DNA of 63,999 nt, filler included, from Reticulomyxa filosa (taxonomy: Eukaryota > Protista > Foraminifera), in assembly GCA_000512085.1 (NCBI GenBank). It is 16 parts of 16 records of this genome, joined end to end, with 100 filler letters (N's around TTAATTAATTAA, not from the genome) between each part and the next. Parts side by side here need not be neighbours in the genome. Positions count along the whole stretch, not along the records: positions 1 to 15,671 come from ASPP01005437.1; 15 more parts are not named here. The stretch is one strand, 5' to 3'. Every line of letters begins with the position of its first letter. Position 1 is the stretch's first letter. Positions 2,267 to 14,300 of this stretch are shown piece after piece. A program made the position numbers and the translations under genes. Under the pieces are notes generated by a model that ran no database searches, was not told the origin of the DNA, and worked only from the letters and a program-made list of their open reading frames with translations.

Positions 2267-5200
2267 TCAATGATCAATATCATTTTCATGTGAGTAAGAT
2301 TTGGATCTGGATTGACTGACTTCTCTCTCAGGAACATCGACGCCTAATTTTTTCAAGATATCAATACCCCTTTGAAGTTTATTTTCAACAATCCAATCAA
2401 TGCACGTTTCCTCGTCGTTATTTTGCAGTGTGGCAATTTGTTCTTTGGTGACATTCCAGAACTCGATCAAATAGCCAAACACATCCATTTGGCCTGTCAT
2501 ACACGCCCACAGTAGCGCAGTGTTGCCCTCGTCATCCCTGACGTCCGGATTGCAGAGCGAAGACCGTACAAGCTCTTGAACACATTCTAAATGTCCCTCT
2601 GCACAGGCTTTCATCAGAGCAGTTTCACCAATTTGGTTTTGATGATTGACGTTGGCATTGTATTTCAAGAGTATCCTCACGGCCTTGACCTCGCCATGAT
2701 CAGAAGCGACAAGCAACGGCGAATTGCCGTACTTGTCGCACTTTTCAATGCTTGCACCTTTTTCAAGGAGCACTTCCAAGCTGGCCGCAGAGCAGTTGTA
2801 GGCGGCCCAGTATAAAGCAGTTTCCTCTCCTTTATTCATTTGATTGACTTCACATCCGTGATCAATCAAAAAAGCGATGGAAGAAGGTTGATCTGTCATA
2901 GCAGCAGCGATCAATGGAGTATTGCCATCTTCATTGCCCAAGTCCAAATTGCAGCCAACACCAGCCAACACTTCCAAATTCTGTAATTGTCCTTTCCACG
3001 CTGCATTGTAGGCAGGCGTGGCTCCATTGTTATTGCGAGAATCGAAATTGAATCCAGTCGTGTACAACTTGAGACTCGTTTGGACAGTACGCTGGACTTG
3101 AACGCCATCCAAGTCCGACGTGGTTGATGACGCCGACACATTGCTATCTCCTCTTGACAATGCGTCATGACGAAACTCATCTCCGTACTTGCTTACTAAA
3201 TACTCGAGGATATTCTTGCCATTGAAAACCAGTGCTGCATGATGTGCGATCGTGTTGCCCTGTTCATCCGTGACGCCAATTTCCAATCCACGCTCATTCA
3301 ACAGCTGCACGATTTCTTTATCCCCCTTTTGTGCGGCCAGGAGAATGGCCGAGTCACCTTGCATACTTTTAGCTGCCAAGTCGGCATTCCAATCGGCCAA
3401 TTGTCGTATGACGGTGGGCTGAGACCCTTCGACGGCACTGAACAAGAGCAGCTCGTCGAACTCGTCGTGCAACGTTGTCACGTCGATACGTAGTTGTGTA
3501 TGCACGAATTTAAGGATTTCCGTGTCGCCATAGAAGGATGCGTAGCGACACAGATGACGCAAACCTCCGCCGTTTTTGGCCATTAACTCCACACACGACC
3601 AATCATATCGCAGTCCCAATACAATGATGCCAATTTGATCTTGCTCGTTCGCTTCAAACATGTTAATGTGCTGCCGACTGCGCAGCAGCCAGTTCAACTC
3701 TTTATAGTTGTTTCGATGCACTGCTCGCCAGAATTGACGCTGTAGCAATTGTTGTCGACTCGTCTTGCCGTCCAATCCAACAGGCATCGTTTTGATCAAC
3801 ACACCACTCGAACGCCGAGAGTTACGTTTGGAGCTGGTCCCTGATTTGTCTGTATTATACTCGTCTGCTGTCTGTTTTATTTATTTATTTATTTTTTTCT
3901 TCAATTGATATTAATAAATCGACATTATAAATTATATGCTTATTTATTAATATCGATTGACCTGGACAAATACGGCCTTTCCTGCTTTGCTTGCGGCGAG
4001 GGCCTTGGTTTCGTCGGCCAGGCTGTCCTTCACAAACTCATGTCGAATGGGATAAAAGGCGATCAAAAACATCCAAGTGGACATGACGGCGATCCAATAG
4101 GACGCAATGGTAAAACTAGACTGCACGTTCACCGAGGCTTTATGCAGCTTTCCAGTACCATACAACTCGATGCCAATGAAGATCAATTCCAAGACTGATT
4201 CCACGAAGCGGGATGCAGTGTATGTGGTAATCACATATGACGCGTACTCCTCCAGATTGGCCGAATCTTATTTCATGTGCGTGTATGAGTGTGAGAAAGG
4301 CAATGCCCCGTTTGTGCATAATATAATAATCGATTAGAGAAAGGTGGGCATAGATGGAGATATATGTCGCATAATGGAGCGACAAACATATTTGCGTGGT
4401 TTAATGTTTGTAATATTGTATTGTATTGTATTGTATTATTATTGTTTGTTTGTTTGTTTGTTTGTTTGTTTGTGGAAAAAAAACTTTTGTTCATATGCAA
4501 AAATTTGCCGGCAAAGAATTCGACAAACATTCGAACAAAAATCAAAGGCGATCCCAAGATGACGAGAACAAAGTAATGAAGTCGATTTAAGCGATTCAAA
4601 AAGTTATCGCGACTGGCAATACGTCCAAAGGGCGAGCTGTAATCGGGGAATGCCAAAAGTGACTGATAAATGAAATTGTAAGGTTCGTTATCAGTGCGTC
4701 CCAATCTTTTTTTTGAATAAAAGGAGAGGGTATGTTATTTGTAATCGAAATCAAAATTTCGTTTTCAAAAAAAAAAAAACTTGAATGGTCCCGAATTGGC
4801 GACCAAAGGAATGAGAATGACCAAGAATAAGACCCACCAAGGAAACAAGGCAATGAAAAAGGCCAAAACCAAAACGCGACTAACGACTTGGAAGAGACGA
4901 TAGCAGTGATTCGCGAAGCGCACAAAGACGTGAGAGTGGAATGAGTCCAAGGCGAGACATGTTGTGTCATACAAAGACAAGGAAAGGAGGATGGACAAAA
5001 CCGAGACGAACAAGGACAGCAATGCAAAATGTTGTACGTCATTGTCGAAGGAGCTATTTTCTCCATACATAAGAAACGTGACGGCAAATAAGCAAAAAGG
5101 AAACGACTCTGTCAGTGAGCGGACTTTACAGAACCACGCAAACTCTGGTACCAGTATTCGTGTGTAATCCCAATTAAACAGCCACGGTGCCAGTTCCAAC

Positions 5201-5946
5201 AGGTATCCTGCATCGAATATCAATTGTAGCCAACAGTAGTTAATACATGAAACACACGATGGCTCGCTTTTATATAACAATGTGTTCGCCGCACCCAAAC
5301 GGTTCAAATGTATCGACGGACCGCCTTGTGCAATGGCTGCGGACAGCAATGCGCGATTTCCCGACGCTGTCTTTGTGTAGCTGTAGCGGGGGAAGTAGAA
5401 CCACAACACCAGAAACGATGACACTCGGTAGAACACGAGGATTAATATCCCTACAATCAGATATTGCTGTGTCAGGTCCCATTCGTTGCCACGGTTACTG
5501 TTTTCGATCAGGTTCGTTAACAATCCCAAGTGCAGTCCTGTATCACAAGAGTGCACAAATGCTATACATGATTCCCACTTCGATGATGGTGCTCCTTGCC
5601 ATGTTGATGTATGTGTTATGTCGTGCAACTTTGTCAGATCCACTGTTCCACTGCTTTGTCTTCGATGCAATTGCGCGTCGTTCTCTTCTTCTTCCAATTC
5701 TTCTTCCGTATCGTGCACTCTTTCCAATCCTCCTTGGACGTGACTACGACGTACTTTACCACTACTTTGTTTGCGGTGCCCCACCACTACCATCCCGTCC
5801 TCTTTGTTTTCATCTATCCCTCCTATGCCTCCTGTCAACACATTCGGGCTCACTTTTGAGGTTCTGGACTTGTAATATATAAACAATATCGTTACAAAAT
5901 ATGGCAAAATGTAGACAAAGGCAACCGCCCAAGCCGACACCACCAT
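2267..5946 (-). CDS. XK-related (Xkr) multi-pass membrane protein fused to C-terminal ankyrin repeats; 4 exons (5946-4781, 4705-4485, 4266-3962, 3871-2267), about 1098 aa
   Basis: XK-like motifs TESFPFCL, SLFVSVLSILLSLSLYD, YRLFQVVSRVLVLAFF and SRFVESVLEL. GT-AG introns 4706-4780, 4267-4484 and 3872-3961 keep frame (total 3297 nt). The last exon has many ankyrin repeats (GDSAILLAA, GNTIAHHAA, GATPAYNAA, GNTPLIAAA, ETALYWAA, GNSPLLVAS, GETALMKAC, GNTALLWAC). Confidence 0.75.
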
Positions 5947-7085
5947 GATGAAGGAGTTTTTTTTACCCCTGACATCAAGGAAGGCTGACCCTACCTACTT
6001 TTTGCACTGGCTCTTGTTGCACAAATTTGAAGTGAAATAAGAAACTTCATACGCTCTGATATTACCCATTCATTAACTTTGAACGCACATTACAAGAAAA
6101 TAAATTTACATCAAACAGTAATCGTTTTTCAAAAAAAAAAACATTAAAATGCAATCTATGCAAGTATTTTGCTCTCTTTATTTTGCTTTATGTTTTCAAA
6201 AGAAAAAATTTCGCATTACACAAGCATATCCACACGTGTGAAAAAACTTAGTTACATGTGATTGCAATTGTTTTTGTTACTGAAAATAATAAACAAGTAT
6301 CTTGAAATGATTTAAAGATAAGCCCTTGCAATAAAAGAACAAATAGAAGACAAAAGACGCTTGATAAAATTTTTAAAAAATATTTTTCACTTTCCATTTT
6401 GTGAGTGCTGGTTGCATTTGCAAAGCAAGTACGAGATTGTACATGTTCAACTTAGATATTTGATTTTAGCAATATCGATAATGTTGCTTGATCTCAATTA
6501 TATTTTATTTCTAAAATTTGCAAACTTTACGAATCTTTTTTTGATATTTTACCATTGACTGGCTAAAGTCATGCAAGTATCTCATTGTAATGTAGATATT
6601 TCAATAAGAAGTCAACATTTTTGAAATTACTTTGAAACTGATTTTATTAAGGCACGTATGCAGATTGATTTTGCTGTATTATAATTTGACAGTATTCTCT
6701 AGTATTAATATGCACATGATTGTTTGTTTACGCACTTATAAATATAAAGAATGCTGTCAACAAGATTACATATAATTTTAAAAATGTTTATACAATTTGT
6801 TTCGTTTACTTGTTTGATGTATGTTTAAAAATCGAATTATTATATTTTTTGTCTTTGTGTGATTGATTGTATTTATTGCGTACTGTTACTGCAAAATGTA
6901 TACATTCATTGTAATGATATCTTTTTTCAACTTGTAAAAAACTCTAATTAAAGCAAATAACATCAAATTTAAGGATTTTTGAGAATAAAATACACAAAAG
7001 AGGCATTTTAAGAAATTCATAAGATGTTATTTCTAAACACTGATAAATTTAATTGTGGAACGTTTATAGAATTTTTACAAAAAAA

Positions 7086-7868
7086 ATGTCAAACGTGCGT
7101 CAATTTTCCATCCCAGAAGATATTCATCTTTTTGTTTTAACTTTTTTGGAACTAAAAAGCTTGGTTCATTGCTCAGAAGTCTGCCATTCATGGCAAAAAC
7201 TGGTTAAAAGTGAAAAAGCAAACGTGATTTTGTGGAAACGTATGTATGAAAGTTTATTGGAGCACAACCGGACGTTGTCAAACTTTAAGAAAAGAGACTA
7301 CTACAGCAACGTTCGTTTCAAAGTAATTAACGGGCGTTTACCAAAGCAATTGATACGGACGTTGCATCATCAATTTATTTCGATGGATAACTACGCACTG
7401 GGTGATTATATTACAGCAATGCCGATTGATGACAAACCATTAAACCAATGGAAGGCCTTTATAAAAGGGCCAGCAGACACTCCATACGAAAATGGTGTGT
7501 TTGAGCTAGAAATAAATTTTTGCGATGAATATCCGTTTAAACCTCCGAAAGTTAGATTTGTAACCAAAATTTGGCATGTTAATATTTCGCAAAAAAACGG
7601 TTTCATATCGTTAGACTTGCTGCAGAACAATTGGTCGCCCGCATGGACTGTGGGGACAATGTTATTAGCTATTATGAGTTTGCTTGGGGATCCCAACTGG
7701 AGAGAACCTTTAAATACAGATGCTGGCAAAATGCATCGCGAAAATCCACAAGATTTTGATGCAATGGCGAAAAAATGGACAATGAAATATGCTACACCTG
7801 AAAAAATTGGAACTAATTCGGTCTCGAAAAACAAAGGGAAAAAGAAAAAAAGATTTGTTTTGTTTTGA
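7086..7868 (+). CDS. F-box + ubiquitin-conjugating (UBC/E2) fold protein, catalytic Cys replaced by Ser; intronless
   Basis: N-terminal IPEDIHLFVLTFLELKSLVHCSEVCHSWQKL..ILWK is an F-box. The C-terminal WKAFIKGPADTPYENGVFELEI..YPFKPPKVRFVTKIWHVNI..GFISLDLLQNNWSPAWTV..LLAIMSLLGDPN..PLN is Ubc4/5-like. Polybasic tail KNKGKKKKRFVLF. Confidence 0.88.
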   Translation: MSNVRQFSIPEDIHLFVLTFLELKSLVHCSEVCHSWQKLVKSEKANVILWKRMYESLLEHNRTLSNFKKRDYYSNVRFKVINGRLPKQLIRTLHHQFISMDNYALGDYITAMPIDDKPLNQWKAFIKGPADTPYENGVFELEINFCDEYPFKPPKVRFVTKIWHVNISQKNGFISLDLLQNNWSPAWTVGTMLLAIMSLLGDPNWREPLNTDAGKMHRENPQDFDAMAKKWTMKYATPEKIGTNSVSKNKGKKKKRFVLF

Positions 7869-8603
7869 GTCAGCCAGCTTTTTTTTATCCTAAAAAAAAT
7901 GAAAACTTCCCAAATCAACCTTCCTCTCCATCCCTCCTGTATACCGTTCCCCTTTTTTTTCTTGTTGTGTAGAACTTTATACTAAATCCAATGAAAATCG
8001 TAGTTTGTCGCTTTTTATCATTATTCTTCAAAAAAATGTTAAAATGCCACTGTTTAATATATCCTTATTCCATGCTACTTTCTACTCTTGAGTTGGATTC
8101 TGTCACTGGAATGACTGATTTTTTTTTCTTCTGATCCTTGTCCCTTTTCAACGCCTTACCATTTGGATATTTTAAATCAATCATTTTTGTGCTTGAAATA
8201 TCTGTTTTTTTAATGTTGTGCAGCTTTTAGTTTTTTTACGTACGGCTGACTCTATTCGTGAAAGGATTTTCTCAAAGAGGTTACCGAAGTTATGAATTAT
8301 TATTCCTCACTACTGTAATCAATGGCATGCAAGCTTTGTATTACTCAAAGTACGTCGTGTCATGCCTTCTTTTTTTCATTTCAGACAAAGTACAAATAAA
8401 GTTTTCTGACTTTGAGTTTTTCAAAATCAATCATATTATAATGAAATGTTATATCTGTGGTATAATCCACTCGCAGAAGACGGAATTGAGACGATAACCT
8501 GACCACATGTTTCACAGACTTGTATCACACGAAGCTGAGCAGAAAACTTAAAGTGAATATTTTTTTCCTAGTCCCTTTTTATTGGACGATATTAAAGTAT
8601 CAT

Positions 8604-11339
8604 ATGAGTCTTATTGGTGGCCATCGTAAATTGTTGCACTCTTTTATTTGTTACAGTTTTAGTTTGATATTTTTGGCATATTGTTTTTCTCATTATGGAG
8701 TATTTCCAGGACACTACCACACAACAATATCCGTGCTTCAATCAATGAAGCAACCGAATCCAACGCAGAGATATGAACTATCAGCAACAAACCAATCAAG
8801 CACGCAGCCAATCTATCCTGAGCATGTTGCCGGGATTTGTTCTGTTGACTTTTATTTGTTTTGTGCAAATATCAAAAAAAGAAGGAGGCTAAAACAAAAC
8901 GGAAATATTTGAAATAGATACAGGCAAATATAACGACAGCGGGAATTATCTGCCAAAGCATGGACAATGTTTTCTGATAATTGAGTCAGTAGAGTCAATA
9001 GTCTCAGCATCGGTGATGAATGCATCACGAGACAAGCAAATAATAAGCAACGTGGCCCGAGCGAAAATGCATTTACTAAAAAATGATAGCAGTACATTGT
9101 TGATAATATTTAGTCACGGCATATATGATCAAAGTCTCGGAGTGGTGCTGCTGTCCTCGCAGAACTTTACGTATTGGAAGGCGATGCATCACTGGCAACA
9201 TAAAGACAGTTCGAGGACGGCGCCGGGTATGAACTTTCGCAATGACACGGACGTGGCATACGACGAGATGGACGACTTATTTACGCCGTGTTTGATCGGG
9301 ACGTCGCAGCTGTGGCAGGCCCATCCCAATGGTCTGTTTGTGCAAATACACAAAGAACAAAGACCAGTCTATGACACCGCAGACCCGTATTATAAAAGAG
9401 AGATCAAAGAGTGTCCAATTGTTATCGCGTTGCAAATGACTCAAGTGTCCACTTTCAAAAAGTCGTTGCAGCTTCAATCCACATCTTCCAATTCTTATTC
9501 CAATTCCAATTCCAATTCCAATTCCGACTCGGATTCTGATTCCAAAGACACTGACGATTCGGATGCTGTTCGTGGGTGTGTCATGACCATTGTAAATAAA
9601 AAAGAACAGCAATGTGGCGTCCATAAGAAAATTCCTGGCTTTATTCGAAGTTTCTTGTCCTTGCAATTTGTCGAACAAGGCAAATTTCTTTCTCAAGCTG
9701 CCAATTATTGGTGGACTGCCTTTTTGCTCACTATGTGTCAGGTAGCGTGTCTGTTCTATCCTTTTTTGACAATTATATACATACATATATGTACATATAT
9801 AATATAATATATTATATTATATTATATTATATTATATTATATATGTATGTATATTGATTCCTGAATAGTGCTACATATTACTTCGACAATGGTCATATGC
9901 CACGCAACATCAATCTCTTATTAAGTTGTCGTTGTGCACATTGTTTTTGCAATCCGTTTACAGTGGTATCATTTTTGCCTTTCATTTTTATATTGCCATT
10001 AATGTCGATGCATTGGGTGCATCTTTTTTGATGGTTGCAACTGTTTGTCTATGGCAATTAAATGTATATAACAGGTTTGTTTCCACATTTTCTTGCTTTT
10101 GTTCTTTCGTCCATCCTATTTTTCTTCTTTTTCTTCTTTTCATTTCATTTATATACACACCACACACATATATATATATGTATATGTATATAACCGACTT
10201 CACAGATGGATTCACGAAATTTGGCACTTGAGACATGGGAATCACAGATCATTAGCCTTTTTTCGCCTTTTTGGCAGCTAAGTTTGTTTGTTTTTTTTTT
10301 TTGGAATAGTAAGATATATCAGTGTCTTTGTTTTCAATATCACGTCAAACATCCAGTGGGTTTGGCAATTTGGTCTTCCGCATCTTTATTGTTTTCAGCG
10401 ACATTATCATGGATTCATGTCTGCGTATATCTATTGTTGTTCTCCGACTGGACGTTTCAAATTTTTCACAATGCCCGAAAAGACGAACGTCATGTGTGGA
10501 GTTTGGGATATGCGATTGGCATCACTGTCTCCCGATTATTCTTTCCATTATGTTTCGCTGATATTCCTCATACAAATTCATATATGTATATATATTATAT
10601 ATACATATGCATATATTTATATACAAATACATACATAATATATGTTATGGATAGGGACGGGACGTTTATTTGTTTTGTGTCTTTGAAAACAATTTTATTC
10701 AATTGTGTACATATATACAACACACATAAAATTCATGTGGCTGATATTCATCTGTCTCATTCACATAAATTGTTTATTGAAGATATCTACGGCTGTCCCG
10801 TGAACATGCTACAAACAGAACCCAATTATTGGTTCTGTGCCGTTCTCGTAGGCTGGTCAGCACTTCAAATTTACATATTACATCTACAAGACACACGGAG
10901 TCCCAGGTTTTTTATTCCTCGCCGTTTTAAACCCACAGGTTACACTTATCATCGTGCTCATACGATTGACGTAGACACAAGCGATGAGAGTGAGGACACA
11001 ATGGACCAACATTCAGACACGGATAACATTACTACGGTCACAGAAGTGAATTCACAAATATCACACCACCATGACAACTCTGGTGGTCAAGAAGAGCTTA
11101 TCACCGGCAGCAACACAATCGACAACACTGTTGCTTTAAAACATCGTGGAGAATCGAAAAAAAAGAAAGTCGCCAAAGTTTGTGCTATTTGCTTTGACCC
11201 TATCAAGAAAAACGCTCCAAATGTAATGGTTACGCCATGTGATCATGTGTTTCATGACGAGTGCTTGCTGCCATGGATGAAACGACAACTCACATGTCCA
11301 ACCTGTAGACAGCCTTTGCCCGAAGAGCATAGTGACTGA
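8604..11339 (+). CDS. TUL1: Tul1/Dsc1/FLY1-like transmembrane RING-H2 E3 ubiquitin ligase (multi-exon)
   Basis: Hydrophobic N-terminus, lumenal region and several TM exons. Conserved YGCPVNML..W..LQIYILHLQD..PRFFIP..YTYHR. C-terminal RING-H2 CAICFDPI..MVTPCDHVFHDECLLPWMKRQLTCPTCR. Exact exon boundaries not fully resolved. Confidence 0.8.
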
Positions 11340-14300
11340 TATTGTTTGCATGTATGTTTTGCTACCCTGCGACTTCTATTTTTTTCAAACTCCAGAAAAA
11401 TATGAAGCCTTGCAAATGCAATTTTTAGTAGTTTTTACAAAAATTGACTTGTCAAACACAAATTGAGCGAAATAAAAAATTGTTGCGCAACAGTAACATC
11501 ACAGGAAAGGTTACATTTGTTACGACAACATATGAAATATCCTACTGACTTTGATTATAATTGTAATGGCAAAAACAAATTGGTAGATGATGGCTGCCTA
11601 GCACTTTTGCAATAAGGTTTTGTTGCTTCACTGCCTCTTTCTCATTTCACAAAATAAAAGTATGTACTGAATGTTTAACACCGCCAATACCTCTTTAAAA
11701 TTGGTCTCGATTTGATTTTGAAGAAGGCAGTGTCGACATCATTCATAGAATCTAATGCAAAATATTACAGTAACAGTATTCTTAAGGTTTGCATTAAGGT
11801 GAGATACCACTTCATCCACATGCTTTTTGTATCTTTATTTCCATGATCAGTAATTTTTCAAATCAGTACGTTGAATTTTGTAATACTGAACAGCTCAAAT
11901 ACAATAACTAAAAGACCAGTTTTTTTAGGGTTAAAAGTTGTTTAAAAAGACTGAAATTTAATCTTGGAGAAAACTAAAAATTTGCTTAGCCCTTTGCTTT
12001 AAAAAAAGAAAATGTATTGCTACCCACTTGTTTTTATTGGGAACACACCAGATGTATCACAACAAGACGCACAACCAGTCAATTTTCGAACAAAAATGTT
12101 TTACTGACAAGACTACTTCAAAAAATAGAAAAAAGGAATAAGCACTTAGGAAATTAGTTAAGGAAATACACAAATAGATAAAGTAAACAATTCACCGACA
12201 ATTGAAAAAATTAGCATTTACTGTAGTATTGAATTTTATTTTTATGTATGGCTATCCAACTGGTGCTTTTTAGTGCGAATGAATGATATGTCGTCAGTTC
12301 TAGCTCTTTGTTCTTTGTGATACAATGTTATAATTTCTTATAAATTACATATCATAATAATGTTATACGTGTTTTCTTCAAGAAAGTTTTTTGTCATATC
12401 AACAGTAATGATTAAAATGATAACACAAATAAATGAATCATTTGGCATAGAAAAATACACATCAATGTAAGGATTGGCCGTGCGTATGTTATAAAGATTA
12501 AATAGTCATTAATCGGCATCAAATGAAAAAACAAGATATCTTTTTTCGAATGAAAAGTTTTATGAAATAATTTATCAAATTGCTGTGTTTTTTCTTTGCA
12601 ATAAATAAAAAAGCACTTTTATACGTATGCATTTTTTCTTAGTCAAGCTGTAAATACTTTTAATTTTAAAATATTTGTTCAACATAATAACTAAAAAGAC
12701 TAAATTAAAATAAATAATTGATCTTTAGGTGTAACATCAAAAATACGACAAACATTTATTATGAAATCATTCGCGAGTACAACTAAAAAAAAATTAAACA
12801 CATAACGCAGTTGTAAAGCATTTTTACAAGAACTGATTACATGTATTTCGAGCGGTACAGATTAATAAATAGATTTATTATAACTTACATTAATAAATAA
12901 AAGTGACAGATATATCAAAGTGTCGACATCGACGGCAACCTCAAGCATTTGCAATTACAGCAACAGAATACTAGTAATAACAGATAGACACTGTAATAAG
13001 ATCTTTGGCAAATGGAGATTCTTTTGGTTTACAGTAAGACGCAAAAAAATTGATGACTTAAAATATCATTTTATGAAGATTATCAATTTTTTCAAAAGTA
13101 TAGTACACATTTTGATGTCCTAGCTTGCTTGTTTTGTCTGATAAAATGATTTTTGCTTTTGTTATAATGTCTTCGCGGATTTTCGCTTTTGTAGTCTGAG
13201 CATTGAAAACTTTTCACATAGCACTCTTTTTGATTCTATTCCGTGTAATTTATTTTTTAATTTTTCAATTTTGTTTTTTCATATTAATCGATATTTTAAA
13301 TTTATAGCTTGTTTATTATTTTTTGTTTTGTTTCGTGTCATATTAGGTCTGCTCAAACACTGAAAAACAAATCTAAAAATCTGTCGTAGTTCTCACTAGT
13401 GCTGCTTACTTTTGTAACGTTGCGTGGTGATGAATTTTTTAGAAAAAAAAGCGTACCTGGAAAAACCTTCTTGTGATACAGGCTTTTAAACCGAAATAAC
13501 GTGATTGTGTGATTATTGTTCCATTCCTAAACAAATTTTTAGTTGAACAAACAGGGGTGATAATTTAACACTGTGTAAAGTTAAAACTCTGACACAAACT
13601 AGTGAATTAAGAGCCAAAAAGAGCGCACAAGATCACATACAATTTTTATATTCTCTGAAAGAGCAGGTTTTTATACACAGAATCAAACGTTTTACATCAT
13701 ATCTTGTGATTGATAAACAATCTGTTTCTCTTTAAAAAACAAAAAAACAGATTGGCTCCAATTGTGTGAGTCATCGATACTACCTTGGTCACAAATTTTG
13801 ATAATTTTAGCTCAACCATAACAAAGGCACGTCGACGAAGGAGGGATGGATTTTAACTTAAAATTTTTGAAACTGGAGTCCAAAAAAATTTACGAGTTAT
13901 CTGTAAAATTGGAGTTAATCTATTTTTTGCTGGACACAAAAAGTAGCTTAAACTGATGAACGTGTAAGAGCTTTTTGATGTATGCGCTTTTGCAGCACAA
14001 AAATAAACACATTTGTGTTTTTTCTAAAAAGTTTTGATCAAAACGGCTGCAACAACAAGCAAAAAACCAGAAAGCGGTTACTTTTTTGTCTTTCAAGTGC
14101 AATACTGGCTAAGTGATTTTGTACATTTTTTTTGCTTAAAAAATTTTTCAATGAACTGTTCCGATCGAAACTGGTTATTGGGACAATACTTTTGGAAATA
14201 ATTTTGTTTTGTGCTCATGACGGTGCTGAAAATTGTACGTTGCAAATGGATTTTGTTTTTGTCTTTGCGTTTTGTTGTTTTGTAGAAGGAGTGACAGCAG

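Follow-up and report, generated by a model that had tools for sequence, protein, structure and literature searches.

Among described proteins, the closest counterpart of the gene product reported here is Drosophila Morgue (CG15437), which was found in cell-death modifier screens and consists of a zinc finger, an F-box and a UEV domain whose catalytic Cys is replaced by Gly (PMC3787007). Morgue associates in vivo with SkpA and with K48 polyubiquitin and binds the RING protein DIAP1, and exchange of Gly421 for Ser, Ala or Cys left its over-expression phenotypes unaltered (PMC3787007). It has been reported from Lophotrochozoa, Platyzoa and Ecdysozoa only, i.e. from protostome invertebrates; according to the same paper, negative regulation of active E2s is a possible role of some UEVs, and Gly at the active site is found in no UEV besides Morgue (PMC3787007). 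Two further systems are relevant for comparison. COP10, a Cys-less E2 variant of the Arabidopsis CDD complex, is found together with DET1-DDB1 in a receptor complex of a cullin ligase (CUL4; PMC7215765), and in engineered UbcH5 C85S, charging with ubiquitin routinely yields a stable oxyester (PMC9501438, PMC9304225).

The locus was found in a window of 63,999 nucleotides (the whole stretch of DNA that was analysed, joined from parts of the genome of the foraminiferan Reticulomyxa filosa, Rhizaria; assembly GCA_000512085.1), on contig ASPP01005437.1. Its product, called P0001, resembles Morgue in that an F-box stands N-terminal to a Cys-less E2-fold domain on one chain. Several features set the two apart. 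The zinc finger (CX2CX12CX2C) is N-terminal in Morgue, whereas P0001 has only 7 residues before its F-box, and no C..C(8-16)C..C motif was present in any plus-strand frame of positions 5947-7090, i.e. the 1.1 kb upstream. The F-box of Morgue contains five conserved Trp residues as compared to two in P0001 (W36 and W50; residues 1-60), and the invariant active-site Gly of Morgue contrasts with Ser in P0001 and in its two relatives described below (P0017 and P0111). Finally, P0001 has about half the size of Morgue and belongs to a rhizarian protist rather than a protostome invertebrate. A first reading of this DNA, made from the sequence alone (called the sequence-only reading), had stated that no characterised F-box-UBC fusion was known. 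This statement does not hold, since Morgue, with its F-box and Cys-less E2 domain, has been studied genetically and biochemically (PMC3787007). In addition, the ESM Atlas contains several clusters combining F-box and UQ_con, which are commonest in Arthropoda and are the nearest to P0001 by language-model features (0.94-0.95). We presume that these mostly arthropod clusters represent Morgue orthologues.

The comparison with the other systems is less close. As in COP10 and UBE2E in complex with DET1-DDB1-DDA1, a Ubc4/5/E-like fold is predicted to be placed at the substrate-receptor end of a cullin-RING ligase, and the human counterpart of that complex (DDB1-DDA1-DET1-Ube2e2, PDB 9ltz) was among the fold matches of P0001. 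There, in contrast to P0001, the E2 fold sits on the CUL4 receptor DET1 as a subunit of its own and is not fused to a CUL1 F-box. UEV1/MMS2 and TSG101 share with P0001 an E2 fold without catalytic Cys and bind ubiquitin non-covalently, but these families are ancient and diverged and their active-site region is eroded, whereas P0001 is near-canonical Ubc4/5 with N77, D87 and N114 (UbcH5 numbering) kept. UbcH5 C85S carries the same residue change in the same E2 family; it is a laboratory trap for the E2-O-ubiquitin ester and is not known to occur as a natural enzyme.

Gene and domain organisation of P0001

The sequence-only reading had described one intronless open reading frame encoding an N-terminal F-box and a complete Ubc4/5-like domain. 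This was borne out: the gene is annotated as a single exon, and both domains score above the Pfam cut-offs. The features are as follows (positions along the window).

7086-7868, plus strand: coding sequence of P0001 (F-box/serine-E2-variant), 260 codons and a TGA stop, unbroken and annotated as a single-exon gene of ASPP01005437.1
7107-7247, plus strand: F-box (Pfam), residues 8-54 (IPEDI...VCHSW...LWKRMY)
7248-7343, plus strand: helical linker from the F-box to the E2 fold, residues 55-86 (AlphaFold; colinear with P0017)
7344-7391, plus strand: E2 helix alpha1, residues 87-102 (helix in the model, followed by a 9-residue insertion and then strand 1)
7407-7778, plus strand: UBC core, residues 108-231 (Pfam UQ_con, PF00179; 139.9 bits, cut-off 27)
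7575-7583, plus strand: HVN in place of HPN (H164 V165 N166; sequence and alignment)
7608-7610, plus strand: TCG codon of Ser175 at the position of UbcH5 Cys85 (sequence and alignment)
7827-7865, plus strand: C-terminal tail, residues 248-260, polybasic, ending in RFVLF, of low model confidence

By our own arithmetic, a run of 271 open codons has a chance probability of about 2e-9 at 35% GC, where around 7% of random codons are stops. In the N-terminal half, residues 8-54 matched two Pfam profiles, F-box-like (PF12937) with 34.0 bits (cut-off 24.3) and F-box (PF00646) with 31.3 bits (cut-off 20.5). PDB sequence matches of residues 1-107 were weak (best E-value 0.0017) and nearly all of them were F-boxes, namely those of FBXW7, beta-TrCP, Skp2 and FBXL5, and the Atlas model of the same residues matched many F-box protein clusters with TM scores of 0.5-0.59. 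Based on the conserved (L/I)P..(I/L) ... VC..W pattern, we infer that P0001 binds Skp1. The F-box and the E2 domain were the only domains recognised by Pfam, i.e. no classical substrate-binding repeat domain was found. In the AlphaFold model (60-sequence alignment as input, mean pLDDT 80.6), the F-box is connected to the E2 fold by helices comprising residues 43-60, 62-66 and 69-81, which have pLDDT values of 57-79.

The E2 domain is far better defined, with pLDDT values above 90 across its core. Its nearest solved structures are UBE2D1-3/Ubc4, i.e. E2s of the Ubc4/5 type (PDB phmmer, E-value ~1e-35), and it is 41-47% identical to UBE2D. Superposition of the model on UbcH5 and UBE2E1 with Foldseek gave TM scores by target of 0.89-0.95 and rmsd values of 1.4-2.0 with helix alpha1 included. 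The Pfam UQ_con alignment starts at profile position 16, yet alpha1 is present upstream in the model (residues 87-102), and the E2 domain is thus complete, as the sequence-only reading had claimed. Its reading of the HVN motif and of the TCG codon was exact, both by sequence and by alignment. Lacking the active-site Cys, the domain would be classed by sequence as a UEV and not as an active UBE2D enzyme, which carries Cys85 and HPN.

The C-terminal tail is polybasic and ends in FVLF, as had been described. Its interpretation as a CaaX-shaped end was rejected: position -4 from the C-terminus is not a Cys, and the tail sequence is not kept in P0017 or P0111.

The GC content of the gene is 35-36% (positions 7001-8000) with a GC3 of 0.375, similar to the GC3 of 0.36 of the paralogue P0017. 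The genes upstream at 2.5-5.9 kb, one encoding an ankyrin-repeat protein and the other a protein of 587 residues, have a higher GC content of 45-50% (compared over positions 2501-5500). This difference could mean weak codon bias or low expression. About 1.1 kb downstream on the same strand, a gene at 9016-11466 (plus strand) encodes a protein of 660 residues with a DUF2921 domain and a C-terminal RING-H2, which is visible in the open reading frame 10206-11339. That a RING E3 gene adjoins an F-box gene with a pseudo-E2 domain may be coincidence.

Relatives of P0001 and the residue at the active site

Relatives were sought by an exhaustive phmmer search against 1.84 billion cluster representatives. 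Among the best 150 matches, which were examined, at least two further proteins matched P0001 over both domains. P0017 (ETO09755.1) is encoded on another R. filosa contig (ASPP01023920.1, L002) and is 44% identical to P0001; P0111 stems from the Logan assembly of run SRR30952584 and is 35% identical. Both share the layout of P0001, in which an F-box-like region at the N-terminus leads via a similarly long linker into a UBC domain, and their N-terminal halves are colinear with P0001 (E-value 3e-18 over residues 7-107 for P0017 and 3e-07 for P0111). The F-box of P0017 gave no Pfam match at E<=0.01 and that of P0111 only a precomputed match graded as faint, weaker than that of P0001. Word-based homologue searches, for which P0001, P0111 and the alignment of the three members served as queries, returned, beyond the known members, canonical or tandem Ubc4/5 proteins only, and none of 50 pattern matches from a JGI metagenome scan with P0001 was a relative.

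All three proteins have Ser at the position of Cys85, and the HPN motif reads HSN in P0017 and HCN in P0111. The paralogue search with tabulation of the active-site residue that the sequence-only reading had called for thus turned up P0017 with a Ser codon TCA (10523-10525 of L002); both R. filosa genes use TCN codons for this Ser. Two alternative explanations for the P0001 sequence were discarded, namely a sequencing error at the Ser codon, as two further loci carry Ser, and an assembly chimera, as the same architecture recurs in P0017, on a different R. filosa contig, and in P0111, from an unrelated assembly. The earlier argument against an error, i.e. that TCG is two substitutions away from TGY, is correct but weak; the Ser residues of P0017 and P0111 argue more strongly. 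Comparison of P0001 with P0017 (NG86) yielded a dN of 0.53 with saturated dS and hence only a rough dN/dS of ~0.19, whereas the sequence-only reading had named a value near 1, combined with a lack of transcripts, as speaking against it. The recurrence of Ser in P0017 and P0111 together with this ratio make an error, a chimera or a long-dead pseudogene unlikely, and as judged from these sequence comparisons the P0001 gene is real and selectively maintained.

From residue ~230 onwards, the annotated C-terminus of P0017 fails to align with helix 4 of E2s (L002:10640-10830). A helix-4 sequence of the KQWVTLYAQ type followed by a stop is present in another frame just downstream of position ~10685 of L002. 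This implies an apparent frameshift of 1 nt by a short A run before the last helix of the P0017 gene, either as an assembly error or as a real lesion.

The residues of the three proteins were compared by alignment to Ubc4/5 proteins of 147 residues (UbcH5 numbering). R5, H75, N77, D87, S94-P95-A96, N114 and P118-L119 are common to all of them, while F62 (F/L/F in P0001/P0017/P0111), K63 (K/K/R), L86 (L/L/V), L104 (L/I/L) and D117 (E/D/D) are changed conservatively. Besides C85, which is replaced by Ser, P76, K4 (I/L/L) and K8 (H/R/N) are gone, and the 9-residue insertion between alpha1 and strand 1 is found in both R. filosa proteins. F62, P95 and A96 of Ubc4/5 E2s contact RING, U-box and HECT ligases, and the corresponding residues of P0001, F151 and S184-P185-A186 (=S94-P95-A96), are retained. 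The basic alpha1 residues K4, R5 and K8 of E2s contact E1, and the loss of K4 and K8 in all three fusion proteins (R5 is kept) argues against efficient charging by E1. Overall, this residue pattern suggests that contacts to E3s and ubiquitin were retained while E1 charging was weakened.

Trees of the UBC domain were quick trees of 148 columns and are poorly resolved. P0001 and P0017 formed a clade (SH-aLRT 93-97) with a long stem among Ubc4/5-like E2s. P0111 nested in the crown Ubc4/5 group, and its UBC domain is ~60% identical to canonical UBE2D-type E2s. A topology uniting the three proteins had a log-likelihood lower by 17.4 and was not rejected in the one AU test performed (p 0.18). Canonical Ubc4/5 proteins with HCN, the motif form of P0111, came from Symbiodinium, Perkinsus, Lotharella and Prymnesium where the organism was named. 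Compared with Morgue by its described features, the R. filosa fusion of F-box and E2 domain likely has an independent origin.

Other natural-looking Ubc4/5-like proteins with altered catalytic positions were observed; laboratory constructs with Ser, such as P0107, a tagged UbcH5 C85S-OTUB1 fusion, were excluded. P0056, P0099 and P0041 (Logan/ENA assemblies) have Ser at the catalytic position (HSN or HCN ... ISLD) and carry one or two ubiquitin domains fused C-terminally (P0056 and P0099) or an N-terminal extension (P0041). On the quick tree they fell into a weak group (SH-aLRT 89) with the canonical Ubc4/5 of the rhizarian Lotharella, so that the change from Cys to Ser in Ubc4/5-like proteins is either recurrent or the tree is too weak to tell. 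P0030, P0031, P0042 and P0193 (ENA/JGI contigs of metatranscriptome size) form a clade (SH-aLRT 96) of proteins of 280-450 residues with at least 30 member sequences, in which an N-terminal Ubc4/5 domain with Ser at the catalytic site is followed by a second, degenerate UBC/RWD-like domain. In view of this clade, pseudo-E2s with a change from Cys to Ser seem recurrent in microbial eukaryotes. A plant tandem-UBC protein (P0021; Gossypium, 284 aa) has Gly at the catalytic position of both of its Ubc4/5-like domains.

Proposed function and competing explanations

We favour, with a probability of roughly 0.55, the reading that P0001 is a Morgue-like F-box protein whose thiol-less E2 domain serves as a module that binds a RING E3, ubiquitin chains or an E2. 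The N-terminal F-box would dock on Skp1 and, via Skp1, on Cul1-Rbx1. The C-terminal fold, derived from Ubc4/5, is predicted to form no thioester because Cys85 is Ser, and would therefore be used for binding and not for catalysis. The retained E3-contact residues (R5, F62, K63 and S94-P95-A96) and the ubiquitin-facing residues (N77, L86, D87, L104 and N114) would serve this binding. The likeliest partners would be ubiquitin or polyubiquitin, a catalytic E2, or RING or U-box E3s, with P0001 acting towards these E3s as a 'pseudo-E2', and the partner would be brought into the SCF complex as a substrate or cofactor. By analogy, such a role matches what is shown or proposed for Morgue with respect to SkpA, DIAP1 and K48 chains. 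The sequence-only reading had likewise suggested that the F-box brings an inactive E2 fold to Skp1 and SCF, which fits the data and has also been proposed for Morgue; its claim to novelty has to be dropped.

The same set of domains could also be read as a decoy or inhibitor, in which P0001 titrates Skp1, RING E3s or E1, delivers no substrate and thereby damps SCF or Ubc4/5-dependent ligases. Apart from its F-box, P0001 has nothing but a dead E2 domain; it lacks classical substrate-binding repeats and retains the E3-binding residues, all of which would suit a decoy, and negative regulation of active E2s has been considered for some UEVs (PMC3787007). Yet decoy and receptor are not separated by sequence alone, and two diverged paralogues under constraint fit specific partners equally well; we regard the decoy as unlikely. 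Quite unlikely, in our view, is a decaying lineage-specific Ubc4/5 duplicate that acquired an F-box exon and has no biological role. Such decay would be in line with the tiny size of the family (three 50%-identity clusters at this similarity among the best 150 matches to the 1.84 billion representatives), with the GC content of the P0001 gene of 35-36% as compared to 45-50% in its neighbours at 2.5-5.9 kb and with the apparent frameshift near the 3' end of the P0017 gene. It is difficult to reconcile with an open reading frame of 260 codons in AT-rich DNA, with two domains that still score above curated HMM thresholds and with the recurrence of the F-box plus Ser-E2 architecture in an unrelated assembly (P0111). 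Furthermore, P0001 and P0017 are only 44% identical yet keep the fold-defining residues, with a dN of 0.53 as compared to saturated dS.

The identity of the replacing residue raises a further question, namely whether P0001 is a natural serine E2. In this case, E1 would load Ser175 with ubiquitin as an oxyester, and the F-box would set a slow, hydrolysis-resistant E2~Ub in the SCF complex. Engineered UbcH5 C85S provides a precedent in forming a stable ubiquitin oxyester (PMC9501438, PMC9304225), and environmental eukaryote assemblies contain further natural Ubc4/5-like proteins, some of them fused to ubiquitin, whose active site is intact except for the Ser. P0001, P0017 and P0111 all have Ser and not Gly or Ala, and the catalytic residues N77, D87, N114 and D/E117, which a pure scaffold would not need, are intact, leaving room for chemistry at Ser. 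On the other hand, E2 mutants with Ser in place of Cys form the oxyester slowly and discharge it poorly. The Pro of HPN is missing in all three proteins, as are K4 and K8 of alpha1, and the R. filosa pair has a 9-residue insertion after alpha1. Moreover, Ser is one mutational step away from Cys and is thus also the easiest neutral replacement, and Gly, Ser, Ala and Cys were equivalent at the Morgue position in the phenotypes tested (PMC3787007). A natural serine E2 appears very unlikely to us, and its predicted role as a built-in E2 or as stored ubiquitin in the SCF complex is as much of a long shot. Even more improbable is the wider proposal that the foraminiferal F-box proteins, and perhaps also the protist Ubc4/5-like proteins with ISLD, are genuine serine E2s that carry a ubiquitin oxyester inside SCF. 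If true, a serine E2 in an F-box protein would constitute a self-contained E2-E3 fusion with ester chemistry on the E2.

Compared with Morgue, what is new in P0001 is the protist setting, the absence of a zinc finger, the Ubc4/5-grade domain and the Ser. Morgue has been portrayed as unique and as confined to protostome invertebrates. A second, probably independent fusion of an F-box to a Cys-less E2 domain, in this case rhizarian, would show that the design was reached more than once. Such repeated origin would argue that the combination itself is useful, i.e. that a pseudo-E2 can serve as a recognition module of SCF. P0001 offers a smaller protein free of a zinc finger for testing the Morgue-type mechanism. 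With Ser in three F-box fusions as well as in other natural Ubc4/5 derivatives that carry ubiquitin or a second UBC/RWD domain, the existence of natural serine E2s becomes directly testable.
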